Origin: Hypanus sabinus | Taxonomy: Eukaryota | Direction: 5' to 3' | Length of the DNA stretch: 64,000 nucleotides | Assembly: GCF_030144855.1 (NCBI RefSeq) | Contig: NC_082722.1 | Location: 20,398,001-20,462,000, forward strand | Part shown: piece after piece, positions 8,250-46,877 of the stretch | Layout: every line of letters starts with the position of its first letter | Position numbering within the stretch: the first letter of the stretch is position 1 | Made by a program: the position numbers and the translations under genes | Notes under the pieces: model-generated | Told to the model about the DNA's origin: nothing | The model's input: the letters and a program-made list of their open reading frames with translations, nothing else | Databases searched by the model: none

Positions 8250-8390
8250 CTCAGCTACACAGCTTCCTTGATGTGTTTACTATATATCTGCACTCAACGT
8301 ATGTTTGCGTTGAAATTTGGTTGCTGATGTGTTCATGGAATTTTAAGGTTGCAGAGCTGCGCAAGTCAGTTTGTCAGCTCCATTTGTAGA
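8250..8390 (-). pseudogene. Degenerate duplicate of the ITIM exon in the 3' region of gene A
   Basis: GADKLTCAALQP* aligns to GAVKLTYAALQI. Acceptor AG is mutated to AA, Tyr to Cys, with in-frame stops. Its flanks match the flanks of 35690-35809. Confidence 0.8.
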
Positions 8391-9127
8391 TTGTGGAAGT
8401 AATATCAAACTCGAGCATCCAGTGACTAATAGAATCAAACGATCGTAAAATATATCAGTGATGTACTTATCAAATTGAACTTTACGTTTCTGCCGCTTGA
8501 CACAAAGTTTATGTCAGCGTTCTTCAACACTTCCCTTTTTAAATCATTGAGAGTTTGAACGGCAAGAGCCTCTCTTATCCCACAGAAGAATAACCATTTC
8601 GTTCTTTATTTAAAATGAATTTCCTCAAAATCTAATTAGGAGAGTAGAGAATTCATTGACGTAATAGTCATATTACTAAATATTTGGCTAACTCACAATA
8701 CAAGCATATTTTTCAGTTATTTCTGCTGATTTTTGCAACCTGATACAACTGCTGAGCACACAAGAGGTTGTTTCACTGCAATTGAAGTTTAATTTGAACT
8801 TGAGCTTCTCCGGAGAGGACTTTACTATATCGTGATTATATATCGTCAGCGATATTGTTGTTCCCCAAGCTGACGTATATGAACTAGAGCAGATTTTTGA
8901 ATCCCATAAACTGATATCTCTGACGTTATTTTGAAAGTGAAAAAAATATCTATTGATAAGGGCAGAATGAAATTTCGCTCGTCCGTCGCAATGTCCGCTA
9001 TTCTTATTCGTATCTTTCAGTACTATTTCAGCCGTCGCTCTTTAGCTTCCCTGCAGTAGATAAGGAGAAACAACACGGGAGACATGCATTCGTTCACAGT
9101 CCACAGAAACGAAGCCTTTTTCGATTT

Positions 9128-9261
9128 TCAGCTTCCCGCTTCTTGTAGACACTTCACATCTGCGTACACTGAATCCTTGTTATCGTGCTTAAATGACGAT
9201 ATTTTATTGTTTTGAAGCTGTAGAGCGGCGTATGTCAGCTTTTCATCTCCACCATGTCGAG
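9128..9261 (-). CDS. Gene A terminal exon with two ITIM-type motifs (LTYAAL, SVYADV); 1-nt deletion near its start
   Basis: Acceptor ttacttccacag. Phase-0 reading stops at 9235 (TRHGGDES*). Adding one A to the GATGAAAG run (9240-9242) gives TRHGGDEKLTYAALQLQNNKISSFKHDNKDSVYADVKCLQEAGS*, colinear with the intact paralog exon at 35690-35809. Confidence 0.85.
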
Positions 9262-12200
9262 TCTGTGGAAGTAATTCAATATCGAGTCTTTATCAATTGT
9301 CCAGCAAAAAAGCGAAGCGATAGATTTTAAGATACAATTGCAATGTATGTAATAATTTTCATTTTCAGATAACAGCCATTTAAAACCGTTTGCACTGAAA
9401 GAGGCAAAAGAGAAATCGCTGTTTATTTTTTCCTCACTGAAATTTCGTTGCCACGTTTTACATTATTTTATAAGGTATTAATTTACTCGGAAACTAAACT
9501 GCTTCCGGACTCGGGCTGCTTACGGAGGTCCGGGAGGTGGTCTGACCCCTGCACATGTAGCACCCAGGCCCACCGCTGTTTGCAGACGCCCTGGTGCTCA
9601 TCAGCTAGATCCTCAGCTATGGGTAAATATCCCCATTGTCATGGGGCAGCCGCGGGAGAGATGAAACCCATGGGTTTACTCGAGGCAGCAAATCTGGGGT
9701 GGAGCACCGAATGCGACTGGAAGTTATTGAACATCATTCCGGCAGCTTCTGCAGCCAAGCAGTAGACACACATATTGCTTTATCAGCTATCCTTTGGAGT
9801 AAACTGCTGAGGCCGAGAGGGGGATTTTCACGAATGGACGTCTTAGGATTTCCACATCTTTCGCATTGGCTTGTGATAATGATGATCATCACCGATTGTT
9901 CTTCGAGACGGCAAAAACACCACCAACCACCAAAATTGGACCCATACTTTTTTTATAGTTTAAGACATAAATTGCAATTATTTCTTCAACACACAATGCA
10001 GATTATGCATCTTACCCGACCACAGTCCCTTGACTTTACCTTTGCATAGACAACATTTTCGTCCTGGTGTCTGACCTTGTGAATTCTTTTGTTTATTTTC
10101 ACGTTTAGTGTAGCGTAGGTAAGCGCATGTTCAACTGGCGCGAGTCCAGCCTGTTACAAACAGGTAGTTGACACTATACACAAGTCTAATGCAATTCCAA
10201 TTCCATAAAGAGAAAATGAGTATGAAGACGTATCCCTAAATACGTTTTTCATGCGGCAAAGTAACATTCTAATACCAGTGAATGAAATTGCAATGTATAT
10301 TATTTCAGAAACGGTGCGAAATGTGTTTTCCCCAGTGCTGAATGTCCCTATGATCTTTTAAGATTGAAATTGTTCTTCAATCACTATTTATAAGACATGC
10401 CACGAGTTGGATGAGTTTCTCATCTCTCGCCATATTTTTCCTTCCGCGGTTATTTCCTTTTTTTCCTCCTTTCCCCAACAGTTTACGAGGGGACGACTGT
10501 CTCCTTTGCAGTCCTCCGACCCCACAGACTATTGAAGGAGCGTTTTGCCGAACAGCTTGTCACCGGCAGTCATGCACAAGAAGACATATCCATGCTTAGG
10601 TCGTAATTGATTATAATATTCCTCTACCAATAAGTTTGTGCAGAGCAAGAGGATTAGATATCAGGGAATAGGAACAAACAAGTGTGTATGGAACCACAGG
10701 AGATAGCAGAGGCACTTACTGATTACTTTGCTTCAGTATTCACTACGAAAAAGGATCTTGGAGATTGTCGGAATGACTTATAGGGGACTGAAAAGGTTGA
10801 GTATGTAGATATTAATAAAGAGTATGTGCTGGAGCTTTGAGAAAGCATCAAGTTGGATAAGTCACCGAGGCCACACGAGATGCACCCTAGGGTACAGTGG
10901 GAAACAAGAGTATATTGCTAAACCTCTGGCGATAATCTTTGCATCAGCAATGGCGGTGGAAGAGGTTCTGTAGGATTTAAGGGTTGCGGATCTTGTTCCC
11001 TTATAAAAGAAAGGCAGTATAGATAGCCCGGGAAAATATTGCCCTGTTAATCTTACGTCAGTGGTTGATAATTTGATACAGAAGTTCCAGGGAGGCAGAA
11101 TTTATGAACATTTGGAGAGGCATAATATGATTAGGAATAATCATCATGGCCTTGTCAAAGACAAGTCATGCCTTACCAGCCTGATTGAATTATTTTGAGG
11201 ATGCGATTAAGCACATGCGATTAAACACATTGACGAAGGTAGAACAGTAGATGTAATGAATATGAATATCAGGAAAGAATTTGACAACGTACCCCATGCA
11301 AAGCTTAAAGAGCAACTAAGGATGCATGGGATCCAAGCAGATATTGCTTTGTGGATCCAGAATAGGCTAGCCCACAGAAGGAAAACAGTAGTTGAGGACG
11401 GGTCATATTGTGCATAGACGTCGGTGACTAGTGGTTTGCCTCAGTGATCTGTTCTGGGCCCCCGATTCTTCCTGATTTTTATAAATGACCTGGATGAAGA
11501 AGTGCTGGGATGGGTTAGTAAATTTGTTGATGGCACAAACTTTGGAGGTGTTTTGGATAGTGTGGAAGGCTGTCACATGTTATAGCGGGACAATGATAGA
11601 ATGCAAAACTGTGCTGAGAAGGGGCAGATGGAGTTACACTCAGATAAGTGTAAGGTGCATAATTTTAGTAGGTCAAATGTGAGCAGAGAATAGAATATTA
11701 ATAGTAAGACTCTTGTTAGTATGGAGAATCAGAGGGATCTCGGGGTCCGTGTCCAAAGGATGCTCAAAGCTGCTGCGAAGGTTGACGCTGTGCTTAAGAA
11801 AGCATACGATGACATGGCCTTCATCAATCGTGTGATGGGGTTTAGGAGCCAGGAGGTAATGCTTCAGCTCTATAGGACCCTTGATAGACCCCTCTTGGAG
11901 TACTCTGCTCAGTTGTCATCACCTCACTATGGGAAGGATATGGAAACCATAGAAAGGGTGCAGTGGAGATTTACAAGTATTTTGTTTGGATTGCGGAGAA
12001 TGCCTTATGAGAATAGGTTGAGTGAACTCGGCCTTTTTCTTTGGAGGCTGAGAGGTTACCTGATAGAGGTGTATAAGATGAAGAGAGGCATTGATCATGT
12101 GGATAGTCAGTGGATTTTTCCCAGGGCTGAAATGGCTAGCACGAGAAGTCACAGTTTTATGCTGCTTGGAGGTAGGCACAGGGAAGATGTCGTGTGTTGT

Positions 12201-15200
12201 TTTTTTTTATGTCGAGTGTTGAGTGCGTGGAATGGGCTGCAAGCGACGGTGGTGGAGGCGGATACCAGACGGTGTTTTAAGAGACTCCTGGACAAAAACA
12301 TAGATCTCAGAAAAGTAGAGTGTTGTGGATAACCATTGGTAATTTCTAAGGCAAGAATATGTTGGGCACAGATGTGTGGGCCAAAGGACCTGTATTGTGC
12401 TGCAGTTTCAAATATACCCCTCTCAGAAGCAAAAACAAAGTTGTTTCACTCACCGGTTCTCCACTCTGACTTGCTTCCTCAGAGTTTGTTTTAATACCTA
12501 ATGGAATTAAAAATAATAGTAAACATAAAAAAAGAAATAATAATAAGCACCATAGATAATAGTGGCATTGTTAGAAAATGTGAAGTTGTGCATGGGATTG
12601 TAATCTAATTTGCTGCCGAAATTTGAAACTACTGTTCAAAGTAGTAGAGGTGCAGATTGTGGCCATGAAATGTGTTGTGCATGACCCTTCAGGAATGTGG
12701 TGGATCTAGATTTTGATTGAAAGAACAGAGTGGCGGTAGCATAACATTAGTCATGTTGTATCTCAAAAGAACTAAACTCTAACAGTAAGATTATCATTAC
12801 TTGTGTAAATTCGCCGCAGGAAGTCACAGCCTGAAAACCATTGGTGACTGAAAATCGTTGGTACAAGGGATGATTGTATAAATTGAACGGGAATGTAAAA
12901 TTATCGTGTTATTTATAATATGTATTGTCGAATGAGAATTGGATAATAAATTGGAAATATTGATTCTCTCAGTATCATTTCTGTTTTTTTTTATTCCGCA
13001 GAGGTAATAAATGGAGATTCTTGTCAAATAATTTATGTTCTTACCACGTTTTGGCTTAACTCCAATTCTTAACAAAATTATAATCAGAATTGCAATTGCC
13101 AGTCCGCCCAGTGCACATCCAAGAATCAGGGATTTATTGCTGTCTTCTAGATCATGTAAAAAAAAAGAAACATATATACATATATAGAGACCGTGAGAAA
13201 AAATGAAGAGCATTTTAATACCAGACGAACTCAGCAGGGCAGGCAGCATCTGTGGGGAAAAGCAGTTAACGTTTCGGGTGAGACTCTTGGCAGGACTGGT
13301 GTTGCCTGGACTGTTGAGATCGTCCAGCATTTTGTGTGTGTTGCTTGGAGTTCCAGCATCTACAGATATTCTCTTGCTTGTGTTTTGGTTCTTCACAGTG
13401 AGTATTTTTTTTTTCATTTGGTTTATAGGAATTTTTCTTTTTTTGATTCCTTTGCAGATAGTTAGGTCGCAATTGCGAAAGGATATCGTTTGTTTCTTAA
13501 ATGTCACTCGAAACTTTCTCAGTAGATCCCATTGGCAAAAAACAGAAAATGAATTTTTTACTTTCTCAAGACATCACTGGACGCATTGGTAGAATATTAA
13601 AATGCGTAATCCAAACCACATATGAGAAGTGACAAGATACTTGGTGAAAACAGGGGAGACTAACGAGCAGGTTTAGATTAAGTAATGGAAAAAAAAGACA
13701 CTTGCAGAGATAATTCCAGATTTAAGTGCAGATGTAGCCAAAGGCATAGAATTGCGCAAACAGTTAAGGAAGAACGGTATATGGAACGATGGAGGTACTG
13801 AAATACTATATATGAACATTTGTAACATAAACATGATATCACTCCTTCTAATACACAATTTTGGAAGTTGATCTTCTCCTGCATGTTTCGAATGTTTCGA
13901 TTCTCAACTGGGATGAATTATAAAGATTGCATTCTCGGACGTTTCCAAAGAATACATGTACACAATATTAGGAGGTAGAAATTACAAAGATTTATCAACT
14001 TATCATTGAAGAAACCTTTTTAGTACCGACTCTTACCACGACAAGGTATCTATCTCTGGCTGAAGGAAACTGCCACTTGATATTCTCAGCCAGAGTCCTA
14101 TCTTCGCATTGTAGTTAGATCTCAGAGAGCTTTTTTGAACAAACTTACATAAAATTATGTTTTTGTCACATGCAAAAGGTAATATTCACATCATTCCTGA
14201 TCTTCTAAATACATATTCTATTTCTTGCTTGAGAGTTCGGTTGGTGCAAATATACCATATGTCTCTTATACTGAACTTACAAAAGCAAAAAATATTTTAA
14301 AACTATTTTACCCACAGTTATTAAATACGCATTCCTTCACGATCTTCCGTTTGTAAATCTTGTTCTTTCTTTTTTTTAACAAATGGCTAAAAATTAATGG
14401 CAATGTGCACAAAGGAAAATGATTGACTTCCCACAAACGAATGCAGCGCTTAACGGGATAGAGAGAGTCATGGAACAGAATTGCGTTTGATATCATATCA
14501 CATCCATGTCATGTGCTTTCTTTAGCACTAATATAACGTCAAATTAAAAGTGATGGCCATAATAAAGAGATTTTCCGGTCACAACATTTATTGGTGAAAT
14601 TTCTGGCAGTTAAAAAAATCTCAATCTGCAGGACAATAGAGCTGGGTTGGACCAATAGGGAAAGAAATAGAATAGCATTGTACTCCATTACCAAAGGTCG
14701 TATTTCAGTAATGCCGTTGGAGTATATACTTTATATTACCCGAACTTCGTTTGAAACCATTGCTACAAAGCGAGGAATTCCGTCATCAAAGTCATTAATA
14801 TTTAATGGAGAAATAGGTAGTTCCAATACAAGCCCCTTTGGAACACCACTATACAACTAGAAAATCATAATCTCGGAGATAAGTTGAACTCCACGCAAAA
14901 CCCAACTATTCTTCACATTTCCTCCTAGAAAATAAGTAAAGGTAAAACCTACTTCATCGGCCATGTATGTACCTGACATCTGTCGACATACCTCTTTTGA
15001 CATCTCAGTTTTTATTAAATATATCGGAATGTTTGCGATGTAATAGGCTATGCATAAATTTAAGAATTTCGTAAGAACATAAAAAAATAAGAACAGCGGT
15101 AAGCTATCTGGCCCATCGAGCCTATAAGATCATGACTGATCTGACGAGGGACACACTCCATCCACCTTCCTTTCCCCATACTGCTGAATTACCCAGCAAT

Positions 15201-18200
15201 GCAAAAAAATATATCCAACTTTGTTTTAAGTATATTTACTAAGGCAGACTCTGCTGCTTCATTGGACAGAGATTTTACTACTCTTTGCGAAAAGCAGTTC
15301 CAATTAATCTCGATCCTAAGGTTACTCTTCAGAATCTTTAGGCAATTCCCCTACTTGTAGTCTCACCTATCAGTGGAAACAACTTTCCTGACTCTATCTT
15401 ATCTAACCCTTTTGTAATTTTATATGTTTCTATAAGGTTTCCACTCATCTTTCTGAATTCCAGCGAGCATAGTCACGGGGGACTGAAACTCTCCTCATAC
15501 TTTAACCCTCTCATCTCTGGAATCAACCTAGTGAACGTCGTCTGCACTGTCACCAGTACATCCTTCCTCAAGTAAGAACACCAGAACTGCACGCAGTACT
15601 TTAGATTCGGCGTCAATACTACCCTATACTGCTGCAGCGTAACATCCTTGCTCTTAAGTTCAATCCCTCTACCAATGAAGACCAACAATCCGCTTGCCTC
15701 ATTGATAGCCTGCTGCAACACCGAACCAACATTTTACAATTCATGCACAAGTATTCCCAGCACAGAAGTATGCTGCAGCCATTTAAATAATAGTCTAATC
15801 TTCATTTTTCCTTCCAAAATAGATGACCTCGCATTTACCAACATTGTACTCCATCTGCCAGACACATGACACTCACTTAACATATCACTTCTCTCTGCAG
15901 ACTATATATCCTCTGCATAATGTGTTTGTCCACTCAGTTTAGTTTCATCAGCAAACTTGGATACACCACTGATTGCCAACCAGAGGAACAACGATCTATC
16001 CCAACTCTCTGCTTTTTATGTTCTAGCCATTTCTCTATCCATGCTAATACATCCCCCCCCCAACTCAATGCATTCTTATCTTATGGACAGGTCTTTTATG
16101 TGGCACCTTATCGAACGAATTCTGTAACTCCAATTATATTAAGTCCATATGTACCCCTCTATGAACTGCTCTTGTTATATCGTCAAAGAAAACCAGTAAG
16201 TTTGTCAAAGAGAACCTGCCTTTGCTTCACACTTGTCTCTGCGCCTAACGGATCAATTTATTTTCAGCAGTTTTTCGTTACTTGTTATTTAACGACAGCT
16301 TCAAGAATTTTCCCAACTGCAGGTGTTAACCAACTGGCCATTTGCTTGCCTTTTGTCTCCCACTTTTATTGAACAGTGACGAATGTCATGAGCCCTCTTC
16401 CAATCCGCCGGGACCTGCCCTGAGTCCGGAGAATTTTTGCAAATTATCACCAAAGCCCAACTATAACCTCTGCCATTTATTTCAGTACGCTGAGATCTGT
16501 CTATCTTTTGACCCACAAGATCGAGGTTCTCACCTCCAATTGCATTCATTGTTATCTCAATTCGCCACGTAAGACGTGCCCTACAGAGTGAAACCCGACA
16601 GAAAATAGCTATTCAAAGCTTCAGCCAAAGGCTCATTATCCAATATAAATTTCCCTTCTCGTCCTACAAGGTACCTACGTTCACCTTGGCCACCGCTTTA
16701 TATAATTATACAAACTTTTACAATCCGTTTTAATATGTAATACTTGTTTATTTTCATAATCCATCTTCCCTTTCTTTATTGCTTTCTTAAAGGTTTTTCG
16801 TTGCTTTTTAACGTTTTCCCAGTCTTAGAGTTTCCTGCTTCTCGGGTTGACCTACGAGCTTTTAGTTTGTTTCCTTCTTTTATATCCTTAGTTACCCAAG
16901 GCTGGCTCTTCCCGCCCTTACTATCCTTCCTTTCAACTGGAATATACTGTTATTGAGCATCGTGAAGAATATCTTTGAATGTATTCCACTATTATATCCA
17001 CTCGTCCCACGATGTAGTCTGCGTTCCCATTCTACCCTATTCAACTCTTCCCTCATCATTTTCAAGTCTCCCTTGATTAGGTGTAATATATTGGTTTTAG
17101 ATCAAATAATTACCCCTCCATTTATATAAGAAAGTCGGTCATGCTGCGATCACTCTTTCCAAGAAGATCCCTAACAACGGCATTGGTAATTTTACTTGTC
17201 TCATTGTACAGCGCCAGATCCAACATAACGTGTTCCCTTATAAGTTCTTCAACACGCTGTTGAAGAAAGCTAGAGTGTATGGATTATATGAAGCCCTCTT
17301 TAATACTGCCTCGACCAACTTGACTCAAATAATCCATGTGCAATCGGTGGCCTATAGAAAATTTTCACCAACGATTTTTCCCTTTAATATTCCTAATCTC
17401 TATCCCGGTGGATTCAACATTCTGCTCCTGAGATCTTATATCGTCTCTCACTATGTCATGATTTCATCTTTAATTTAGCTCGCTTTCCCAACTCCCTTAT
17501 CTTCCTGCCTATTCTCCCGTATTACCTGATATACTTGGTAATTTAATTCCCTATTCTCTCCATTCTACAAACACATTTCTGTATAGGCCACTAACTCATT
17601 GGCCCTTATACTGATTTGTGCAACAACTTCACTGAGCTTGGTACGGACACTACGGGCATTTAGATAAAGTGCCCTTACACGCATTGTGCCTTTAAAATCT
17701 AGTGATCTTTCTCTTGTAGGCGGTGGACTCTCTGAATTCCACCCTTACTTTTCTCTTTTTCTAACATTTGCTTTTACTTTATCTTTATCCACACTTCTCT
17801 CAATTATTTTATTAATACTTCTGCAATCTCCTGAACTAACCTAAATGCTACTTATTAAAAAAAAAACGATGCACAACCCTAGTTCAGCGATTCGCTAGAA
17901 TCCAGATCCCATCACGTTTCAGTGGAGCTCGTCCGAGTGGAACAGCTCCGTCCTCAATCCCGGTGCCAGTTTGCCATGAATTCAACCCCAATTCTCCCAA
18001 GCCAATTCTTGAACTACGTGTTTAACTGTCTAATCTTCTTAACCCTGTGCCAATTTGCACGTGGTTCAAGTTGTAATATAAAGATTACCACTTTTTTGCG
18101 GGGTTCAGCTTTTAATTTAGTCCCGTGCTGCTCAGAATCCCTCAGCAGGATCTCTTTCTTCGCTCTACCTTTGTCCTTGATCCCTACATTTCCTTGCAGG

Positions 18201-20355
18201 CAGGAAATAATGTAAAAAATAGTACACACGTTAACTTTTCCTCGTTGGAAAAAGAAATGAGATTTCATATTTCCTTGCTGGTGTTTGTACAGCTCTCCAG
18301 GCATTTTTGTTTCCATTCATCTGAGCTTGCTTTAAACAATTCCGTTCTTACCTTGTTCAATAGTATAGCTGAAATTTGCAGGAGTTTTTAGCGCTTCGTG
18401 AGATACCAGGCAGGTGTAAACCACTTTGCCCTGAGCAGGCTGTGCATCTTCCAAAGTACTCGAAGCCTCATAAAATCCTTCTGAAGTCTCTTCTATTGAT
18501 ATTTCTGGTTTGGTTAGAATTTCCATATTATTTCTTCGCCAAAAGATGTCCAATTCCTGAGGATAAAATGCTGCAGTTTTACACATGAGTTTCCGGGAGT
18601 TAGATGATGTTTCTTCAACACGAATGATTTTCAGCGGAGTTGGCGGAGCTACAAAAAAATAAAACGGACGTAGAATATTTAGCTATTATTTGATCGCACA
18701 TACTCTCCGTCTCCCGCTACCACTCTCAATTGTTATCAATACGGCCGTTTAAATTCGCCTGAGTTTTTCATGTTTTAATTGTTTCAGGGGGCCGGTAAAC
18801 ATGACAAAATAGATGTGCTGGTGACAGGTGGAGAACGCATGGCTGTATGGAATAAACGCAGCAGACTTAGCGCTTGCTATGATTGACTTTATTTCTTCTT
18901 CAAACTGGCTATTATTGTCCCTAACTCTGCCTTTGTAGGTCAATGTTGTATGAGTGCAAAATGATAGGCTGCGATTCAGCATAACTATGCTGGTTTCAAT
19001 GGGATCGGCATTGTGCTGTAGCACACGTAACAAGTTGTGTTTCTCACTGTATAGGTTTTAATCCCAAGTCCCGTAATTCACATTAATGAAGTGGGTTTGT
19101 TTGCCTTTGGGCTTTAGATTGAAGGTGAATATATTCTTCTGTGAATTTACTGAATTGTTAATAACGGTGTTTCGATGTTCCACGTCTCCCGAAAGTACAT
19201 CGAGAGTTTGGCAGAGTGAAAGATGTTTATTAACTACTTATAAATATTTGTAGCTATGCGTTTAAGCAACTGCAGAATAGAAATCGGTGTAATACGTCGT
19301 GATGTGGTAGTATAAAAACAGGCTGAATAACGGGAGGATGTAAGTTAACCTCGGCAAATCTTCGCTTTGGATTAGATTGCTTGTGATTTGCCCTTCAACA
19401 CAATTTGTCTAAAGCTCCCTAGTTAAGCCGAATCAAATTCGTCGTCCAAAAATTAGGTGGTTCAGTTCATCCGCAAATTAAATCATCAGATTAATAAAGT
19501 TTTAGGGGGCTGTTTGAGGAATAGGTCATGGCGGGGACAGAGTGGGGCGTTCTGGAGGAATATAGAAATATGGTTGGAAATATCAACGGTCCAAAAAATA
19601 GTTGAAGCAAAAGCTAATCTCCAGAATCACATCGAAATAATAAACAGAACAATCCGAAAAGGTCTAAAATGATCTTTTCCTTGCTTTTAAAAATGTAAAG
19701 CAAAGCACTGGCACACATTCTAAACCAGCAATACCATTTCACAACCACAGTTCCATAATCGTGGGTTTTCCTAAAATGCAAAGAGATGAAAATTCTCTAC
19801 TTCCAAGAATAAAGACACTTACTTAACACAATAAGCCGAGAACCACTTCCATATCCCAATATTTGTTGGTGACTTTTCACTTGACAGTAATACACGCCGA
19901 CGTCAGTATATCTCACATTCAGGAGGTTAAAGCTGCCACGGCCTTTCTTAACATTGAATTGATTTCTGCTGTCTGGTTCGATAAATGTATTCTGACCATC
20001 CTTCCACCACGAAACTTCAGCAGTATCTTGTATTAATGGAAATTTGCAAAACATGGATCCTTTGCCACCGATTGAGAAGTTTAAGATTGTAGGGAATTGT
20101 TCCACTTTGGCCGAAGTTCCTTTTGAGGCTTACAAAGCATAAGTCAGAATGATGAAAACACTTCCATTCACTGTACAGAGAATCAACAGACAAAATAGGC
20201 AGAACTGTGGACATTTGATATAGCTAACTTTGCTGCGGGTTACAAATGTATAATGTTATAACATACTTGTTTTGTAGATAGGGCAAAAAATTAAGCGTAC
20301 CTGGCCAAAATGCTGCGAGGAGAGCCAAGAACCAAACTTTTGCATCCACCGACAT
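9128..20355 (-). CDS. Gene A: non-rearranging VJ-C1-TM-ITIM immunoglobulin-superfamily receptor. Six exons: 20355-20301, 20128-19823, 18648-18352, 13146-13045, 12497-12454, 9261-9128. 312 aa if one base is restored in the last exon; 276 aa without ITIMs as assembled.
   Basis: All junctions are GT-AG with compatible phases (1,1,1,1,0). Translation gives a signal peptide, a V domain with both Cys, Trp and a J-like GYGSGSRLIV, a C1 domain (FYP, W, YTCLVSH), a hydrophobic TM and a tail exon carrying LTYAAL and SVYADV. Confidence 0.88.
10610..12410 (+). mobile_element. CR1 LINE, 5'-truncated RT region in gene A intron 5
   Basis: FINDLDEEVLGWVSKFVDGT, and ORF 11721-12332 (QRDLGVRV...LYRTLDRPLLEY..Q..SPHY.KD...ERVQ.RFT...RLRG.LIEVYK). 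Confidence 0.92.
12454..12497 (-). CDS. Gene A exon 5, short cytoplasmic exon GIKTNSEEASQSGEP
   Basis: Strong acceptor tttttaattccattag and donor CCG|gtgagt; 44 nt converts phase 1 to the phase 0 required by the ITIM exon. Confidence 0.72.
13045..13146 (-). CDS. Gene A exon 4, stalk plus transmembrane
   Basis: 102 nt, phase 1-1 (catgatctag| ... G|gtaaga). EDSNKSLILGCALGGLAIAILIIILLRIGVKPKR; a clear paralog lies at 40993-41091. Confidence 0.9.
13195..13365. mobile_element. Short palindromic element built from inverted Penelope-like termini
   Basis: gaactcagcagggcaggcagcatc ... gttgcctggactgttgag..ccagcattttgtgtgtg inverted arms; related copies at about 6170-6300, 26360-26570 and 42890-42990. 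Confidence 0.6.
13670..13860 (+). mobile_element. L1-type ORF1 C-terminal remnant
   Basis: IIPDLSADVAKGIELRKQLRKNGIW resembles the L1 ORF1p motif IFPDLSAEV...KQLR..GI. Confidence 0.45.
14330..15060 (-). mobile_element. Highly degenerate CR1 RT
   Basis: SGVPKGLVLELP...NINDFDDG corresponds to SGVPQGSVLGP...INDLDDG. Confidence 0.6.
15065..18200 (-). mobile_element. Long CR1 LINE (ORF1 esterase remnant, endonuclease, RT, 3' tail) in gene A intron 3
   Basis: RALYLNA APE start near 17650-17690, RT/C-terminal ORF 15473-15721 (LKYCVQFWCSYLRKDV), aagaacataaaaaaataagaac tail. Confidence 0.88.
18352..18648 (-). CDS. Gene A exon 3, C1-set Ig domain
   Basis: 297 nt, phase 1-1 (ttttttgtag| ... G|gtaaga). 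LMCKTAAFYPQELDIFW...GFYEASSTL...YTCLVSHEAL shows the C1 hallmarks FYP, DGxY-like E strand and CxVxH. Confidence 0.95.
19823..20128 (-). CDS. Gene A exon 2, V-set Ig domain with germline-encoded J-like G strand
   Basis: 306 nt, phase 1-1 (tttgtaag| ... A|gtaagt). SKGTSAKVEQFPTILNFSIGGKGSMFCKFPLIQDTAEVSWWKDG...DVGVYYCQVKSHQQILGYGSGSRLIVL. Confidence 0.95.
20301..20355 (-). CDS. Gene A exon 1, signal peptide MSVDAKVWFLALLAAFWP
   Basis: ATG at 20355, hydrophobic core, phase-1 donor CCAG|gtacgc, 172 nt upstream of the V exon (typical IgSF leader intron). Confidence 0.88.
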
Positions 20356-35689: not shown

Positions 35690-35809
35690 TCATGTGTTTA
35701 CATCTGCGTACAATGTCTGTTTGCTTTGATGTTTCGATGACTGTGCATAATTCGAATCGGGAATCTGCAGAGCGGCATAAGTCAGTTTGACAGCTCCAGT
35801 TCCTTTAGT
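35690..35809 (-). CDS. Gene B terminal double-ITIM exon (open)
   Basis: Acceptor ttactttcacag; phase-0 TKGTGAVKLTYAALQIPDSNYAQSSKHQSKQTLYADVNT*. Confidence 0.88.
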   Translation of the reverse strand, partial: TKGTGAVKLTYAALQIPDSNYAQSSKHQSKQTLYADVNT

Positions 35810-36559
35810 CTGTGAAAGTAATCCAAATTCAACCATTCGTCGAGCATTTAGTGGCTGATTGAATCACACGATCGAAAAATAAATTAGAGATGTACTGATC
35901 AGTAATGAATTTTACGTTGCTTATGCAACACAATTATGTCAACGCCATTTCAACATGTCCCTTAATGCTTTATATATTAGCGTTTTTTTTCTTTACTTAA
36001 AATAACTTTAACAAAATCAACTTACAAGACTAGAGAAATCCTTGAAGTAGCAGATATGGTACAAAACAATTGGCTAACATAGTATAATCACATTTCTTTG
36101 TCACTTGTGACTGACTGCCGCATCCTGATTCATTTATGGAGCTCATAGGTGTTTGCTCAGCCGCACCTGCCAACACAGCTCCAAATGCACATGGACATCG
36201 TTGTCAGTGGACAGCACAAAACTGATGGAATAAACGTTAGCACTTTGTTCAGTCAGGCTCTCTAATTACAGTTTTGTCACAATTTGGTATTACAGGGTTT
36301 TCAGTTCTCCTCGGTTATTATCAGACACGTGTTTATTATGGAACTGAAGATGGGCGTTGGGACCGATGGCATTCCCAGTCTCGTGGTTTTTGGCGTTTCC
36401 TCATGTGCAAATTATATGTGAAATTAAATTTGTAAAAGCAAAGAAAAAGTAATTTCCAGAGATTCTTCAGATGCTGCATTTCATGAAGAAAGCAAACAAA
36501 ATACTGAAAGGAATTCATTAGGTAAGGCAACTTGCAAATGATAAATAAACTGTCGATTG

Positions 36560-36850
36560 TCTCGGGCAGAGACGCTTTATCAGGACTGGAAAAGAGGGAT
36601 TAGAATCCAGAATATAAAGGTGTGAACTGGGTGCGGGAAAGTTAGCAGGTGACAGGTGAAACTAGGTGAGTGCAAAGGTATGTGGATCACTGCGTGGGAA
36701 TGACGTAAGAATTGGAAGGTGTCGGGTGCAAAAGGTAATCGGTTTATGAAGCAGTCGGTTACGGGAGGACCGTGGACCCTGCAAAATGGAAGGAGGAAGA
36801 GCACGGGGAAGGAAGGCAGCCTGATGGGCAGATGACGACAGGGGAAATGG
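36560..36850 (-). mobile_element. Penelope-like 3' fragment
   Basis: Purine-rich block homologous to the other copies. Confidence 0.6.
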
Positions 36851-36899
36851 TGGACACTATTACTGTCTGTAAACCGAGTAACAGCTGTTTTGTGCTGCT

Positions 36900-37800
36900 C
36901 CTAGTTTTGCTCCTTCCTCCCTAGTTCAAACTTCGAATGCAAAAAAAAAAAAATCCTGATTCTTGATGGGGACAATATATCTTTGAGGAGTCGGAAGACA
37001 TTGTCTGAACCTGGTGATAAATGCAGCGGAAAAGGGAAGATGCAAAAGGAAAGATCTGATGAAATGCCGTCGTGGGCGGAGAATATGGTTCGAATAGTAA
37101 TTTTAATTGAAGACCTAATGGAAAAGAATAGTAATAAAATGATGTTAGTTAAAGGAAATCTTAAAGATCTGGAAACTCAAGTTGTTACAAATGAACAGCA
37201 ATTGAAGGTAACTAAGCAAAAATTGTTTGAAACTACATCTTGTCCGGAAAGATATCGAACCAAGATTGTAGACATGGTCGAAGGTCTCTTCGAAGGAATA
37301 TACCTATTGTTGTGCTGCAGGCAGGAATCGAAAATGGAGACCTAACTGTGTACTTTGGTAAGCTCTTTCATACCTTATTTCCTGCTATAATATCGCAGCG
37401 TCCTAGCTTCACAGATTGTTTGCTTCGAGACACCAGGATAAGCCACGTTGTACTGTAGTCTGTTTTCATCATTTTATGATTCGGGATCAAATAATGCGCA
37501 GGCAAGAAAGCAGAGAGTTTTCAGATTTGAGAATACTGAGCTCCCTTTATATGAAGATTATCCGAAGGACGGAATGGAGCAAACATCAAAATTTGCTCTC
37601 ATAATGAAACAGTCACATGAAAAGAAATTGCCTCCTTCTTTGCGTCACCCAAAAAGAATGAAAAATTTTCCTCCTGACTCTTCTCCAAGTACTTATTTTG
37701 TGTTTAAAACGGCACTGGCGTTTGTTCAAACCATACCTGCTGTAACTGCCTATTGAAATGTCTGGAAGGTTATTTGGATATTTGCATTAATATTTCCGAA
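36900..37800 (+). mobile_element. L1-type ORF1 remnant
   Basis: Coiled coil, then GIENGDLTVYFGKLF..LFP, VVCFHHF..RDQIMR, LYEDY...KFALIMKQ; frameshifted. Confidence 0.75.
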
Positions 37801-38046
37801 AGAAGATTTATGACGGCTGATTTATGAAGATCAGGAGACTTGTACATTATTGCAGATCATCGGTCTGATTGGAAAGAAGATTTATGGTTCATTTATGATT
37901 GTTTAATTTGTTATTCGGACATTCGATTGAGAAAAAGAAGATAAGAGGACTTATTCCTTTAACCTAACATCTAGTTAGAATTTTTTTTTCTTTTGTTTCT
38001 TTCTTAATTACCTAACTGCTAGTTTTTCCTACTAATGCAGCTATTT

Positions 38047-38048
<2 letters not shown>

Positions 38049-38092
<44 letters not shown>
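38049..38092. repeat. (TA)n microsatellite
   Basis: Direct read. Confidence 0.97.
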
Positions 38093-38093
<1 letters not shown>

Positions 38094-38695
38094 TTAGATA
38101 TCATATTTGGTTTCTCTAGGTAATATATTTTAGATCTTAATTACTGTTTATTTTTAAAGTTTTTTCAATATATTAGTATGTTGTTTTGTGTAATAGAACA
38201 TAATAGTGCCTTATATCTGAATTTAAAGCTTTTTTAAGAAATCTGATGTTGAATTTAAGATGGCACTGATATTTCTTTTTAAGAGCTATAAATATTTTTG
38301 ATTTTCTCGGTAAAAAAAATAAATATAAACATAGGATAGTTTGTAGATGCCGGAACGTAAAAACTTTTTTTATTGATACGCTTTTGCTTCTTTTACAAGC
38401 TCAGTAGAATTTTTTTTTAAACTAGGGTGTGAGGTAGAGAATCTTTTTAAATTCTCTGTGGACAGACAGAGCAGTCTCGGATTCGTTTTTCCATCAAAGG
38501 GCGCTTGTTTTTTTTTCTGAGCGGTGGAGGAGGATGTGGGGTTAGAGTTAGAGTTAGGGAGTTTTTCCCATTGGGTGGTTCCGGAGCATGGTAACATATT
38601 TCACTAAAAGGAGATTAGACATGACGCACTTTATATTTTGTTACAGTGTCAATGGTATGCACAAGTTTGTAAAATTAACTTCCTCTTGGATGATG

Positions 38696-38697
<2 letters not shown>

Positions 38698-38738
<41 letters not shown>
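38698..38738. repeat. (TA)n microsatellite
   Basis: Direct read. Confidence 0.97.
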
Positions 38739-38741
<3 letters not shown>

Positions 38742-40992
38742 CCCTCTGGGCTACTCCGGTTTCCTCAAAAGACTTACAGGTTATGAGGTTAGTTGGTCAC
38801 CTGTGTGTGAGTGAGCGGCATGGACTAGTTGCACCGGAAGGACCGGTTATCCTGCTATATCACTAATTCAAATCTTTATCACTTTCATGCTAATCTCTCT
38901 TCTTTACCTGGGAATAGATAACGCGCTTCTCCGGTTTTTGGTCTTCGCGAAATGGTTTGCTCCCTGTTGTTCAGTGAAGGATAGACAGTAGAGTTCTCAA
39001 CCAGTGCTTGTTCAGCCTTTTAGAAAAACATATTTAATACATCTCACTGATGCACAGCTCAGTGATCATAAACTAAATTAAGCTGTAAAACCTAACACCA
39101 AGGATAAAAAACTGTTAGAATAATATTTTGTCTGCGCACAGTGATACTGTCCATACATCATACCGGATGTTCTCGACCGTTTCAGGCTAGAAGTCGGTAT
39201 GTTCAGATTTTCAAAGCACCGCTTTTAACAGTCCTAGCAATAGGATGGGGTTCGTAGTTCTGACCATCCCTGATATTTTGATCTCCTAAGTCTATCTCTT
39301 ACATCGCTCTAAGTTCTATGCTTGGGCTCCTGCCCATTGTCTATCTTTTACCCACGTGTCGAATTATCGTGATCATTACCCTGATCAGAATTCGTCCCGG
39401 CGGTGCAAACTGAAACTGTAATCCTTATACTCACATTACATAAGTTAAGGATATTGGAGGAAATGGCAAGTCCTGAAGCTAAGTCTCGCTTAACTCTAGC
39501 CGGAAACAGGAGAAAGGTATCCTGGGACTATGTTGATTTCACTGGTTTTGCTGGTAAATCACTAAAAATATGACCGGTATTGGTAGAACCAATGGACGTA
39601 GACATTACAGTAAATGATAAAACTGCAACTTGTTTTGCTGAAATAATGGCATAGCAATCCAGAATAATGAAATAATATTTTAAAAAAATATCATGATTGC
39701 TTCATCTTCAACTTGGATATTAATCTAAGAAGTCGCCCTGCATTTCCGGAAGTGTTACTAATACCAGCAGAAGTTTTAGCGGAATTCTACCATAGTGAAA
39801 TTAGTGACGGATTTATTACTATTTTATCTTAGTTGCTGCAATTGCTTAATTTGCTCCTAAAGTCGCTGGGTAAAATTAAAACTAAATGCGTTAAACTGGG
39901 GAAAGTGATTAATGAACCACAAGAAGAAAAATTTTTATCATGAAAATGAATCCTGGTAGCAAAAATGTAATAACATTAAAGTGCTGGATACATGAAATAA
40001 AACAAAGAAATAGAACAGACAAAATTCAAGACAACTGACCTTCCAATGGTAAATATTATATTTTCCCCTTCCAATCCAACCGGTTGTGAACTGATGTGGA
40101 ACTCTTGAAAGTATACAGGAAGGAGATGCAACGAGAACTTTCAAATAAATCTTGGATATATACTTAAAAATAAATATTTTACGGGGAAGTAGTTTTATTT
40201 TCATTACTACGTTCCAATGTATTATGGAATAAAATAGATATATGATAACTTTTCTATGCGAATATCCAGTTCTGAAACAAGACGAATCGCATCACCTACA
40301 GGGTCTTCATTCTAACATCCATCCAAAGAATTTGTGTTACCCCCATCCAAAAAGAAATCAAAAATAAATGATTTGAATTGTAAACATTGTACATTATTCA
40401 TTTGACACCAATCGAATTAATCGTGTAAGTGGAACTGCTGAAGTTACGGATCTTTCAGAAAGTATTTGTTGGCAACAGTCGTGCTAATAGTGCTAATGTG
40501 TGTTACATTAACCTGGTGCTATGCTTAAAAGGCTTTGACTATCAACGAGGCTGTAAAGTGATGACAGCATAACTGCAGCGGTAGTGTATTTAAGTATGGC
40601 AACCAAAATGGAAATTAAAACCAATGAATCGTACATACTTTGGTCAAGGTTAATTACACAAACAGAGGGAGTTTTGATCTACGCCAAGTCGTTTACGTTT
40701 CAAAATACGCACCTGCCATTGTATTAACAAATTATATTTAAAGAACTCCAAAGGGTTGTAACAACGTTAGGAAATGAGATATTAAGTACTTCCAGTGGAC
40801 TGATGAAATAGTTGAACGTTAAGATCAAGCCAGAATATTGTGCCAGAATATTATCACTGAAATGATGCTTCGAAAATCGCGATCTATGTCCAATCATTCT
40901 GTAAATGTCTTTACTGTTTTGAAGTTCAATGTCACTAACCCTTCAATTTTGTACGAATAGAGGTGATGTTTCTCAGCAATCAGCGTTCTTAC

Positions 40993-41091
40993 TGTGCGAT
41001 CTCTTTAACTTGAGTATCAGCAAAATTATTATCAGAATTAAAATTACCGTTCCTCCCACTGCACATGCGAGAATCAATATGGTATCTTTGG
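40993..41091 (-). CDS. Gene B transmembrane exon (open)
   Basis: 99 nt, phase 1-1 (cttctttttt aag| ... A|gtaaga). AKDTILILACAVGGTVILILIIILLILKLKRSH. Confidence 0.85.
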
Positions 41092-41559
41092 CTTAAAAAA
41101 GAAGACAGTGAAACACTTATACATCTCAAAACAAATCCACACATGGGAATCAACAATGCAAAATATTACATAGTTTCATTTCAGATCTCACTACACACTG
41201 ATAGGAAAATGGCAGAATATACAGTATACAACACAAAAATCTGCTTTAGTTTCTCCAGACACATTGGAGCTATTTACTAAGACTAAGAAGAGGCTTATCT
41301 GCTTTTCCCACTATAACTCTCTTGACAATTGATATCAGCACAACTATTGAAAGTGTAATCATCTAACCTAATACACGTCTGATCTCGATTTCACGTTTCC
41401 CTTTGCACTTACTAAATTGAATAAACAAACGACTAGTCCAATAACTAAGCATGCATTACGACTACGGTTTCAATGTCGTAAATGCTTTGGATTGACTAAA
41501 TTTATCCTATCAAGTCCTATTATATTCAATTTTTCTACCAAACATTCAGAACTGATCTA

Positions 41560-42620
41560 GCTTTTCTTTTGTGGAATACCAAGTGAAAAAACATGTTTTC
41601 GTGATTTATTCATGGATAACTGTCTTAAGACTTCTGAACAGTTGTCCAATAAATATAGTTTGCCTAGATCACATTTTTCAAATATAGTTTACCTCATTTT
41701 CAGATACCACATCAAACTGAAATTACAAGAAATATAGGTTTAAGCCCCTATCAGAAGAGCTTAATAGCAATTATTTATTATCTGATTACGAAAATAAGTC
41801 TAGGTACATCTGATAAAATTAAAAATGAATGGGAAAGAGATCTTCATGTATCTTTACCTACAGAGAAAAGGGAGAAAATTCTCCAACTAGTTAACACTTT
41901 TTCAATTTGTGCTAGGCACGCCTTGGTACCATTTAAGGTGGTTCATACGGCCCATATGTCTAAGGATAAATTATCTGTCTTTTATTGTCATATAAATCCT
42001 GTCTGTAACAGATGTAATTCTGAAGTGGCTTCCTTAATACATATGTTCTGGTCCTGTTTTCTTATAGCAAAATATTGGAAAGTCATTTTTGATACGATTT
42101 CAGTAGTTTTGCGCATTGATGTACAACCTCATACTATTACTGCAATCGTTGGATTACCAGTGATGGACTCCAGTCATTTATCCCCTTCCCCTTGCCGTTC
42201 CATTGAAGTTGTTATATTAATACCAGAAGATCAAATTTATTTAAATGGCAAGATTCTAATCCCCCTACTTTCCCAAACTATAATATGTTTAAACCTAGAA
42301 AAAAACTAGAAATGGTACTATCGATCCTTCGGTTAAATTTTAGAAACTTGGAGGATATTTATTCAACATTTTCATATAAGGTAAGCTGACCTTTTTACGA
42401 ATCCTTCTCAATAACCTTCTATTCGTGTATAGATGAGCGGAGTTAAATACAAATAATGATTTTAGCCGGTCAAACACGGCAGCCCAGCTTTTGTATTGTT
42501 TTGTTTTGTTTTATTTTTTGTTATTCTTTTTAGTTTAGAGGAACATTTGTCTTTTTTGTATAAAAGTTTTTCAACCTTTTTCATATCCAGTTATTAAGTG
42601 ATTCGGAGGCTTAGATAATA
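41560..42620 (+). mobile_element. L1 ORF2 C-terminus and 3' UTR
   Basis: ORF 41923-42309, FKVVHTAHMSK.KLS.FY..INPVCNRCNSEVASLIHMFWSC: cysteine-rich domain. Confidence 0.85.
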
Positions 42621-43015
42621 CATGTTACTCGGAGTCTGTGTTTGTAGACGTTGACCGTTAGTAATGTAATCCCGTTCCCTTTGTATTATTATCTTTGTTA
42701 TGTTTATTAATTCGAAACTTAATAGAAAATATTGAGAAAGAAGGAATGTTCACTGTAATCAGGTAATCTGTAAATTTCGCTCTTCTTATGTGTTTCGGAC
42801 GCTGTTCTGTGACTGTTCTTAACCAGGTTTGATCGGCACACATATATCATTTGGAAACGTTTCCATCTTGCCCTGAGCGCTAGAGATTCTGAACATGTTC
42901 AGAATTCAGAGTAACACACAAAATGCTGAAGGTACGCAGCAGAAAGGAAAGGAATATAATAAGGACATTTCGGTCCGATACCTTACACCAGGACGCAATC
43001 AGGACACCATCTTAC

Positions 43016-43064
43016 CTTGCTCCAGGATGTAGCTGAAACTGACAGGCACCGTGAGGGAGACATG
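43016..43064 (-). pseudogene. Duplicated 3' fragment of a C1 exon (HVSLTVPVSFSYILEQ) with canonical donor
   Basis: Near-identical to 43458-43506, bounded by AG and G|gtaaga. Confidence 0.8.
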
Positions 43065-43457
43065 CTTTATCATATTTTTTGCAAATGTCCAGATGTTTGC
43101 TACCTTACAACTATTGCACGATTTCAATTTCTTCATTCGTGCTACACGACTTACAGCGACGGGAACAACACATCATCTCTTGAACAATTTTCACGTTTGC
43201 TATTCACTGTCAATAACTGATCTTTAAAATTAGTCATTCTTCTGTAGTAGCTGTTCAGTTACTGCAATTACACGGTCACATTGACCGCACCCCTATCGCT
43301 TGTCAGCGCATCCATCTTCTATTGAGAGCAAATGATTCTGAACATGCTGATATCCAGAGTTAATCAGAAAATCCTGTCAGAACTCCGCCAATCAGGCACA
43401 TCTAAAGTATCGACGTTAAAGGCCCAACATCATGACTTCATCAAGACACCAACTTGC

Positions 43458-43751
43458 CTTGCCCCATGATGTAGCTGAAACAGACAGGCACCGTGAGGGA
43501 GACATGCGACACCAGACAGATGTAAACATCTTTTCCCCAAACAGACCGATTAATTTCCAATAAACTGTAAGCGTCGTACAAAACCTCCGCCATCCGGTTT
43601 ATCACTCTTTCTATTCGACTGCGAATTTGCCTGTTATTTCCTTCCCAGAAAATTTCTAATTCCTTTCGGTAGAAGGCAGCTATTTTGCAGAGGAGCTACC
43701 AAGTAGCTGAAAACTCTCCAAAAGGAACGATTTCCAATGGAATTGCGGGAA
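43458..43751 (-). pseudogene. Gene B C1 exon, disrupted
   Basis: 294 nt, VPAIPLEIVPFGEFSATW*LLCKIAAFYRKELEIFW...VYICLVSHVSLTVPVCFSYIMGQ. TAG at 43696-43698 sits where gene A has Lys; donor is G|gcaagt. Confidence 0.9.
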
Positions 43752-44599
43752 CTTTAACAAAGAGATAGTTATATTAGATATTTACCATTCATTTAGTTAA
43801 AGTAAATTCCTTTATCTTCCCTCCAATTACAAAGACATTTCACTATGCACATAGTCACCTGCCATAGGTTACCAGCATTTTATAAATTATTTTAAGTTTA
43901 ACTTCATCAGTATTAAACTACACAGATGTACATGGCTGAATGAAATATCGTTCTTCTGGGGTCAGCTGCAAAATACCGTCCATGTATTTCCACACAGCAC
44001 GTGCAGTCACCATCCAGCACAAACAGGGCTAAGTAAACACAATAGAACCGAGTCACCGTGCAGAGACAGATGAAAGGAAGAATTCGAAGAAAACACCGAG
44101 AAGGCGAATCTGAGGTGTGCCAAGTGAGGAAGACGTTCAGTTTTGTATGGTCTCTCAGTATTATCACACGATCGTGTTTGCGGCCGCCCGTTGGCTTTGG
44201 AAAATGTTGATTTCAGTCTTTTTTTCTTTTCTAATCAAAGCTGAACTACAACCCCAAAATATGCCAAATTTCCACACTCCGAACGCAATAACCTCTTGCC
44301 TATGTTTTTTAATATTCTGGATATTCGTTTGTTCAGATAGTTTTTCAGAGCTTGCGCTGGATCTTTCCAGTCATCAACATTCAGTGATAGAGCATTACTC
44401 GGAATGTATAGATAGAGCTTTCCCGTACTTTATATGTTGAATATGACAAATCGTACCCTCCATGAAACATCTAGGATCGCTAATGCGAGGCTGATATGAA
44501 GCGCATTTATTCTACATTTCTATTCTTTCATAAACCTGTCGGCCTGCAGCAGAATTGTCGATAGCGACCTGGCACTAGTATCCGAATGATGGTGCCCTA

Positions 44600-45520
44600 C
44601 AGAGAGGCAACCCAGGAGTTGAACGAACTCCACTTCTCCCTACAGAGATTTCACTCAAATTTGAGCCCCAAATTCACGATTTTGTAACCGTGGACTGCAC
44701 CGCTACAACCATGGTCCGTATTTAACTTAGAAAAGTCTATTTTCAAATTCCTTTACCGATGTGTCACAATATTTAGCATTTCGCTCCCTGCCTACAATGG
44801 CCATCCTGAGATCACGTTTGCCCGCACAGCACTGCCATGGACCATATAAGGACTACAGTTATTTGTGTACTTGTTGCTGTAAGGCAAATTAGTTTGTATA
44901 AGTCCTCAGGGTCCGAGATGGAGTCCCATGCGACCTTTTAGGGAGGTTTGTGCAGAATTCTAAGGCGCCATGATAAAGGTATTCAAAATGTCCTGATCCT
45001 CGCGTGAGGCGCTGGAGGACTATAGATCACTAATGTTTTATAGTTATTCAAGAAAGGCTCCAAGAATACGCCGGGATCATTCAGGATGGTGAGCCTGACG
45101 GTTGTGAAAGGTAACTTATTGGAAATATTCCAAATGACAGGATACATAGCAATTTAGATAGGAGTAGATATAGTCATCAAGATTTTGTGCATGGTAAGTA
45201 GTGTCCAGCTTAACTTTAAGAGTTTTTCGCGGAATTTACCCAAGATTATGGTGAAGGAAATGCAGTGGATGTTGTGTCCATGGCAAACCCCTTGGTAAAG
45301 TCCGGAATGGGAGTCCGATCAAGAAGGTTCAGTCGGCATTCAGGATAATGTAGTAAAATGCATTTAACAGTGGTTTGGCAGTAAAGCCAGGGAGTGGTCA
45401 TAGACGCTATTATCTGACTGCAGGCCTGTATGTAGAGGAGTACAGTGGGGTCGGTACTGGCTACGTTGTTCAATGTACATCTGTATTAATGATTCGTATG
45501 AAAATTAATTAAACTGTTTG
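44600..45520. mobile_element. CR1 fragments in both orientations
   Basis: Plus-strand AVDVVSMANPLVKS/VTSGV..G.VLG.LF remnants at 45250-45490; inverted piece at 44600-44850. Confidence 0.6.
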
Positions 45521-46720: not shown

Positions 46721-46877
46721 CTGCACACAGGGAATAAAAAAAGAACCGAAAGACGCGATGTAAGTTATTGGCCAACTAAAAGCCTAAAACGGCCGATGTA
46801 TGCAGCGGGCATGCATGGTTAAATTTTCTAAAGCAGAATACTCAGTTCAGAAACGGAACATATAACTTTGCATAAAC

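Follow-up and report, generated by a model that had tools for sequence, protein, structure and literature searches.

A stretch of 64,000 nucleotides from the ray Hypanus sabinus (RefSeq assembly GCF_030144855.1, contig NC_082722.1, positions 20,398,001 to 20,462,000 of the forward strand; hereafter the window, numbered from its first letter) carries on its minus strand a gene that starts with an ATG at 20355 and ends with a stop codon at 9130-9128, here called gene A, and, on the same strand between 35.7 and 46.9 kb, a second copy, gene B. The minus strand was assigned to gene A from six-frame open reading frames (ORFs) together with a motif scan and, once the exons are joined, the gene is intact: seven exons encode 349 amino acids (1,050 nt including the stop codon) with no internal stop, every intron is of the GT-AG type and the phases are consistent throughout. 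These exons, read directly, encode a membrane protein with a germline-joined V(J)-C1 ectodomain and immunoreceptor tyrosine-based inhibitory motifs (ITIMs), as had been proposed in a preliminary description of the region. The V domain, the J-like strand, the C1 domain, the transmembrane span and the tail motifs that it placed between 9128 and 20355 are all present on the minus strand, and those two limits are the stop codon and the ATG of the gene.

Exon structure of gene A

As they were first listed, the four parts of the gene do not join in frame, two cytoplasmic exons of 44 and 111 nt (exons 5 and 6 in Table 1) having been missed. Both were recovered by tblastn with full-length relatives. 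A junction of the transmembrane exon straight to the last exon was rejected, given that it sets phase 1 against phase 0 and meets a stop after six codons; the mismatch is resolved because the 44-nt exon (3n+2) turns phase 1 into phase 0. Exon 6 is in phase 0 at both ends, so its skipping would keep the frame, and it can be regarded as a possible cassette exon. The same exon phase layout is found in gene B.

Each small exon of gene A has a counterpart within the RefSeq models of other rays (the P-numbers used from here on are the labels of the relatives' proteins in the searched protein library). The leader has its match in P0002 and P0004, and exon 4 is 78% identical to the transmembrane exon of Mobula P0002. 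The 15 residues of exon 5, GIKTNSEEASQSGEP, agree at 13 of 15 positions with GIKTTSEEARQSGEP of the Mobula birostris RefSeq protein P0169, and they have further homologues in P0018 and P0163. Exon 6 is homologous, according to tblastn, to parts of P0018, P0057 and Narcine P0005 (proteins of Mobula, Hypanus and Narcine), and exon 7 is 54-55% identical to the last exons of P0005 and P0018. The predicted splicing of gene A rests on homology.

Table 1. Coordinates of gene A, of the decayed gene B and of other features in the window
Feature	Position	Strand	Remarks
Gene A exon 1	20301..20355	-	55 nt; ATG and hydrophobic leader/signal peptide; donor gtacgc; leaves phase 1
Gene A exon 2	19823..20128	-	short V domain and germline J-like G strand; phase 1-1; donor AA/GTAAGT
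Gene A exon 3	18352..18648	-	single C1-set domain; phase 1-1; long pyrimidine tract and AG before, GTAAGA after
Gene A exon 4	13045..13146	-	102 nt; short stalk, uncharged transmembrane span, basic stop-transfer K-P-K-R; phase 1-1
Gene A exon 5	12454..12497	-	44-nt cytoplasmic exon, G-IKTNSEEASQSGEP; acceptor ttag, donor gtgagt; phase 1 to 0
Gene A exon 6	10040..10150	-	111 nt; LTYATL and VVYAK(T); acceptor aacag, donor AAG/GTAAAG; phase 0-0
Gene A exon 7	9128..9262	-	LTYAAL, SVYADV, stop TGA
Candidate polyadenylation signals	8610..8798	-	ATTAAA 8793, AATAAA 8610; pattern match only
Relic terminal ITIM exon	8283..8384	-	LTCAAL, internal stop, TLSADI; acceptor cag changed to caa
High-copy interspersed repeat in intron 5	10633..12436		17 nt from exon 5 donor
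Gene B, decayed paralogue	35693..46930	-	from tblastn and tree
Gene B leader	46853-46930	-	
Gene B V	46381-46685	-	frameshift; YYW for YYC
Gene B C1	43456-43764	-	stop
Duplicated fragment of gene B C1 3' end	43011-43073		
Gene B transmembrane exon	40979-41086	-	
Gene B exon-5-like	40261-40344	-	stop in homologue of the 44-nt exon
Gene B exon-6-like	38899-39016	-	frameshift
Gene B tail	35693-35830	-	
Retroelement remnant	61861-63699	+	zf-CCHC ORF, then ORF with integrase zinc-binding and rve core

Domains, membrane span and tail

Exon 2 closes with Y-Y-C, 10 residues and Y-G-S-G-S-R-L-I-V-L, immediately followed by the donor, which upholds the earlier claim of a V domain and a J-like strand within one exon and corrects its spacing of nine residues. 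Likewise, the statement that no recombination signal sequence (RSS) flanks the exon holds, given that a scan for RSS-like heptamers and nonamers separated by 12/23 spacers was negative in the regions of both gene A and gene B. In Pfam, the V exon scores 29.5 bits with Ig_3, 29.2 bits with V-set (over its C-terminal half only) and 27.9 bits with I-set. Its cysteines are 54 residues apart, and the full A'BCC'C''DEFG sandwich of V-set domains, with about 65-75 residues between them, is not what gene A encodes. In an AlphaFold model of the V domain built on 28 family members (pLDDT 91.9), DSSP assigns strands A, A', B, C, D, E and F as well as a G strand that G-S-G interrupts, and leaves the stretch from C to D, where C' and C'' would lie, without any. 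The solved folds nearest to this model are the V domain of shark IgNAR, CD79b, Ig lambda V, the V-alpha of the T-cell receptor (TCR) and VpreB-J, with TM-scores of 0.72-0.81 and 16-24% identity. Based on these folds and on the spacing of the cysteines, the modelled domain is an antigen-receptor-type V of the short kind.

The C1 exon reaches 36.3 bits with the Pfam C1-set model, for a cut-off of 21, and 22.4 bits with the butyrophilin-type C model (C2-set_3), under its cut-off of 27, so that it is a true C1-set exon, as had been described. It matches Ig constant domains and the structure of shark UrIg2 (PDB 9dmx) in a sequence search of the PDB. In an AlphaFold model of the V-C1 pair, built from the closest orthologue, P0002 (pLDDT 90.2), the C1 part shows the expected strands of the seven-strand fold. 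Its Y-T-C-L-V-S-H motif is invariant or nearly so across the family. In the family alignments, which comprise 28 members for the G-x-G stretch, both cysteine pairs, the tryptophan, D-x-G-x-Y-x-C, one glycine of G-x-G and the histidine of the C1 motif are invariant, while the arginine of the R-D salt bridge, the other glycine of G-x-G and the valine and serine of C-x-V-S-H are kept in at least 90% of its members; gene A retains all the family-invariant residues. The C1 exon is also single: it had been proposed that an additional one would turn the gene into an ordinary SIRP, and tblastn with two-C1 relatives detected no second C1 exon in intron 3, between 18352 and 13146.

The membrane span encoded by exon 4 contains no charged residue, in agreement with the preliminary description. 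The G-C-A-x-G-G at its start recurs in many inhibitory members of the family and may be a dimerisation or packing motif. The tail that follows has 104 residues and four tyrosines arranged in two modules, the first consisting of LTYATL, 23 residues and VVYAKT, and the second of LTYAAL, 22 residues and SVYADV. LTYAAL and SVYADV had been noticed from the start; calling the tail a double ITIM, however, falls short of its content, as three of the four tyrosines lie in canonical ITIMs. The likeness of the two modules suggests an exon duplication. SIRP-alpha also has a tail with four tyrosines in two pairs. Among the variants listed in genomic contigs of related organisms, all the indels fall outside exons 4-7, none of the substitutions listed in exons 6 and 7 touches an ITIM core, and the one listed in the transmembrane exon is synonymous; their counts are small, and this pattern lends gene A weak support.

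A chondrichthyan family resembling SIRPs

Gene A is not a relic unique to its own locus. An exhaustive HMMER search with the C1 exon returned 477 proteins at E <= 0.001, and about 75 of the best 150 have a V and a C1 domain positioned as in gene A. More than 90 cluster representatives were recovered, all of them chondrichthyan; the names looked up belong to rays (Mobula, Hypanus, Hemitrygon, Narcine, Pristis, Amblyraja and Leucoraja), sharks (Scyliorhinus, Heterodontus, Heptranchias, Mustelus, Chiloscyllium, Hemiscyllium, Stegostoma and Carcharodon) and a chimaera (Callorhinchus). With these relatives, and with a decayed copy and a relic exon in the window itself, the multigene nature attributed to the family is borne out. 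The members of each species share one chromosome-sized contig. Beyond Chondrichthyes, word-indexed searches with the single protein and with a family profile, and a search with the tail only, yielded just one unrelated multi-Ig protein from a lungfish. Furthermore, in the AlphaFold cluster library one shark cluster stands out (E 1.5e-21, 35% identity, TM-score 0.89) and the next match, at 1.5e-13, is 8 orders weaker, which makes the family a discrete group without a close outside relative in that library. Its automatic names conflict with each other and include SIRP-alpha/SHPS-1-like, B7-H6-like, Ig lambda-like, TCR beta-like, tapasin-related, MHC class II-like, PD-L1-like and CD276-like, the commonest in RefSeq being SHPS-1/SIRP-alpha-like. 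This kind of scatter arises when no clear orthologue exists. The family had been considered possibly uncharacterised, and indeed no paper describing it was found in a literature search that left subscription journals aside, so that the claim stands within that scope.

According to their membrane spans and tails, the relatives can be sorted into members with a neutral transmembrane span and ITIMs (28), with a charged span, mostly due to an arginine, and no ITIM (16), with a charged span and an ITIM match (7), with a neutral span and no ITIM (31, some of them truncated models and some belonging to a subgroup with a Cys-rich span and a basic tail), and with no span detected (23). Judged from the sequences, the coexistence of ITIM-bearing and charged-span forms looks like that of a paired-receptor family. 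The Cys-rich subgroup (P0095, P0105, P0193, P0205-P0209 and P0213), with a span of the form W-I-Y-L-C-G...C-C, a long basic tail and no ITIMs, fits neither the inhibitory nor the charged-span type. A few members of the family have two C1 domains, such as the skate P0010, whose second C1 opens with the same PPTPLKI motif; due to this, the number of C1 domains does not separate the family from SIRPs, as had been assumed at first.

When the V-C1 model was compared by Foldseek with the AlphaFold models of Swiss-Prot, the best matches were rat and mouse SIRP-alpha and human SIRP-beta-1 (E 2e-13 to 5e-12, TM-scores of 0.76-0.79), followed by Ig kappa and lambda, TCR beta, BTNL9, CD276, B7-H6, CADMs, TAPBPR and PD-L1, all of them at 14-23% identity. 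Language-model features likewise put SIRPs first, with "Signal regulatory protein alpha" (0.96) second only to an SHPS-1-like cluster (0.97). Gene A shares with SIRPs an N-terminal V domain, with its J-like G strand, ahead of the C1-set domain(s), the type I membrane topology, inhibitory members with several ITIM tyrosines and sister genes with a charged span and no ITIM. It differs from them in that gene A and most of its relatives have one C1 domain instead of two, and in the shorter V domain without C'' strand, the d1 domain of SIRP having about 12 residues more between its cysteines than the 54 of gene A. SIRPs themselves, which are V-C1-C1 proteins, have been argued to be relatives of the antigen-receptor precursor (PMC2785349), and they are listed among the joined-VJ genes of the Ig superfamily in a review of the relatives of CD28 (PMC11599192). 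Profile searches of the PDB were rejected as a means of ranking SIRPs against Ig and TCR chains, since summing over domains brings multi-domain titin, contactins and Ig heavy chains to the top.

A stronger claim would be that the family is the true chondrichthyan SIRP, co-orthologous to SIRPA/SIRPB, most of its members having lost one C1; this differs from a mere likeness only in asserting orthology. The first place of SIRP-alpha among the reviewed matches, by fold as well as by features, the commonest RefSeq name, the existence of V-C1-C1 members, the four tail tyrosines in two pairs and the coexistence of inhibitory and charged-span forms, as in SIRP-alpha and SIRP-beta, all speak for it. 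Nonetheless, the identity is about 20%, neither domain of gene A groups firmly inside SIRP, and the E-values of Ig light chain, TCR beta, BTNL9, CD276, B7-H6 and TAPBPR lie within 1-2 orders of those of SIRPs. The only close AlphaFold cluster is that of a shark, with the rest 8 orders of magnitude weaker, and the second C1 of the skate protein, with its identical PPTPLKI start, looks like a recent internal duplicate rather than a conserved d3. Orthology with SIRPs is for these reasons a possible but doubtful extension of the likeness.

The preliminary description framed gene A as resembling a TCR or a light chain. The V(J)-C1 layout behind that comparison is real: gene A has the leader/VJ/C1 exon order, the phase-1 introns, the G-x-G bulge and the true C1-set domain of Ig light and TCR chains. 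However, it undergoes no rearrangement, has no RSS and keeps V and J in one exon, it lacks charged residues in the membrane and has an ITIM tail of its own, and its V-C1 arrangement is, in the model, extended as in SIRP. A SIRP-like paired receptor fits better, in view of the charged-span sisters and of SIRP-alpha as the top fold and feature match.

Cartilaginous fish do carry germline-joined Ig genes, and the ectodomain could have come from an ancient joined Ig light or TCR chain that later acquired the membrane span and the ITIM tail, in which case the family would descend from rearranging receptors instead of being related to their precursor. A joined light-chain gene has exactly the leader/VJ/C1 order of gene A, with every intron in phase 1, the V domain matches light-chain and TCR V domains along its full length, J region included, and Fab light chains come first by E-value when the V-C1 model is compared with the PDB by Foldseek (with TM-scores of 0.4-0.47, the poor superposition being due to the elbow angle). 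Against this, identities to Ig and TCR chains do not go beyond 20-25%, the V domain has no C'' strand, the scan of the gene regions found no RSS remnant and, with members in chimaera, sharks and rays, the event would have to predate the chondrichthyan radiation. The same ambiguity has been acknowledged for SIRPs (PMC2785349). On balance, we consider such a descent unlikely.

UrIg and UrIg2 are non-rearranging elasmobranch VJ-C genes with many C domains, antibody-like and Fc-like, in whose description ITIMs are not mentioned (PMC12227049). Gene A shares with them the germline VJ exon followed by C1-type domains, and its C1 finds the UrIg2 structure 9dmx among its best sequence matches in the PDB, but gene A has a single C1, a transmembrane span and an inhibitory tail. 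The highest summed score with the C1 exon corresponds to P0001, a "titin-like" Carcharodon protein of 1105 aa with 10 matching C1-like stretches; given that its accession is the next after the one that PMC12227049 cites for white-shark UrIg2, P0001 is probably a UrIg2-type gene misnamed by automatic annotation. As for IgNAR, no structure matches the V model better than its V domain, which is likewise short; unlike gene A, however, this domain is rearranged and part of an antibody, secreted or in the membrane, and the identity is 18-24%. IgNAR V domains also lack the C'' strand. Finally, NITRs, NKp30, CD79 and PRARP resemble gene A in their germline VJ-type V domain and, in the case of NITRs, in the pairing of ITIM and charged-span forms. 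NITRs consist of V alone or V-I, and NKp30 of a lone V; to our knowledge, no receptor of this kind has a C1-set domain together with four tail tyrosines. NITRs and other VJ-type innate receptors are listed with SIRP as joined-VJ members of the Ig superfamily (PMC11599192).

Some members of the family bear the RefSeq names B7-H6-like, PD-L1-like or CD276-like, and BTNL9, CD276, B7-H6 and PD-L1 are among the fold matches, which might point to a ligand of the B7/butyrophilin type with a V-C ectodomain instead of a receptor. However, the TM-scores of the B7 proteins are lower, Pfam gives C1-set 36 bits and the butyrophilin C domain 22, which falls short of its cut-off, the family has kept the J-type G-x-G, and several ITIMs with charged-span sisters are the signature of paired receptors. 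A ligand of that type is highly improbable.

Taken together, we favour, with a probability of about 0.75, that gene A is an intact, non-rearranging type I receptor of a chondrichthyan-specific family most similar to SIRPs. Considering the two-C1 members, the charged-span sisters, the paired tail tyrosines and the position of SIRP-alpha as the top fold and feature match, "chondrichthyan SIRP-like paired receptor" is a better label for this family. Several observations weigh against this reading of gene A. There is no RNA run listed for 18200-20400, and the runs that hold the locus are low-coverage genomic DNA of relatives, in which introns are covered like exons. The closest RefSeq models (P0002, P0004 and P0169, from Mobula and Hypanus) have no ITIM exons and end by intron read-through after the transmembrane or the 44-nt exon, or by splicing elsewhere; they may be annotation errors or real tailless isoforms. 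Within the orthologue group of gene A it is Narcine P0005 alone, joined by remoter paralogues, that attests the use of the tail. In addition, the fourth tail tyrosine, in VVYAKT, is not in a canonical ITIM, and the identity to SIRPs, about 20%, is barely ahead of that to Ig light chains, TCR beta, butyrophilins, B7 proteins and TAPBPR.

If a SIRP-like receptor is what gene A encodes, its function could be pictured by analogy with ITIM receptors such as SIRP-alpha, whose ITIM biology serves as the model (PMC12975943). Once the V domain binds its ligand, the tail would come within reach of Src-family kinases; after their phosphorylation, the ITIM pairs would dock the tandem SH2 domains of SHP-1/SHP-2, and these phosphatases would damp activating signals in the leukocyte bearing the receptor. 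The sister genes with a charged span and no ITIM would, for their part, act as activating partners through an ITAM adaptor. A chain with a single C1 may, moreover, dimerise, because C1-set domains normally pair with another domain (PMC2785349).

Cartilaginous fishes are the oldest living jawed vertebrates, and a large family of V(J)-C1 paired receptors that spans their chimaeras, sharks and rays supplies concrete genes for the debate on the origin of antigen receptors, and opens the way to synteny comparisons with the MHC, antigen-receptor and SIRP regions and to tests of dimerisation and ligands. Outside antigen receptors, MHC and their close associates, C1-set domains hardly occur. It is conceivable, although we give it little credence, that this family, more than the SIRPs of tetrapods, is the closest living descendant of a non-rearranging membrane VJ-C1 ancestor of Ig and TCR; two chains of the family would then associate by their single C1 to form a TCR-like dimer that uses its own tail for signalling.

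Birth and death at the locus

In a tree of V-C1 sequences, gene A forms a group together with Mobula P0002 and Hypanus P0004 (support 99), to which Narcine P0005 is sister (96), whereas gene B clusters with Hypanus P0207 and Mobula P0014/P0178 (98). Among the search matches, the Hypanus sabinus protein nearest to gene A is only 72% identical to it, which would make gene A an unannotated paralogue in that species unless its own record lies outside those matches. The Hypanus and Mobula orthologues of gene B look intact. In Mobula hypostoma, the B-type and A-type proteins have consecutive accession numbers, which suggests the same tandem order there. The relic exon lies 750 nt past the stop codon of gene A and is nearer to the B-type tail than to that of gene A. 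With a decayed gene and a relic exon adjoining an intact one, the family evolves by birth and death. The locus has thereby gained a corrected seven-exon model and a case of this process in which an intact gene, a decayed gene and a relic exon coexist within 40 kb.

In such a cluster, gene A might itself be a young, unexpressed pseudogene that is intact by chance. The decay of its neighbour gene B, the lack of any RNA run listed over its exons and the presence of a repeat 17 nt from the donor of exon 5 are compatible with that. By contrast, its 1,047 coding nucleotides in seven exons contain no stop or frameshift, its splice sites conform to the consensus, its terminal branch in the tree, at 0.14, is as long as those of its orthologues (gene B has 0.34), and it retains all the family-invariant residues. 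An undisrupted but dead gene is accordingly improbable.

No conserved neighbouring gene was found in the window, only transposable elements. The repeat in intron 5 has two further copies in the window (55061-56688 and 57017-57604) and reaches a depth of 10^4-10^6 in genomic DNA of related organisms. Its ORF of 203 aa (11721-12332, plus strand) matches no Pfam family. The 1.8-kb repeat is missing from contigs of related organisms, where 10632 is followed directly by 12437; due to this empty site, the insertion is considered young.

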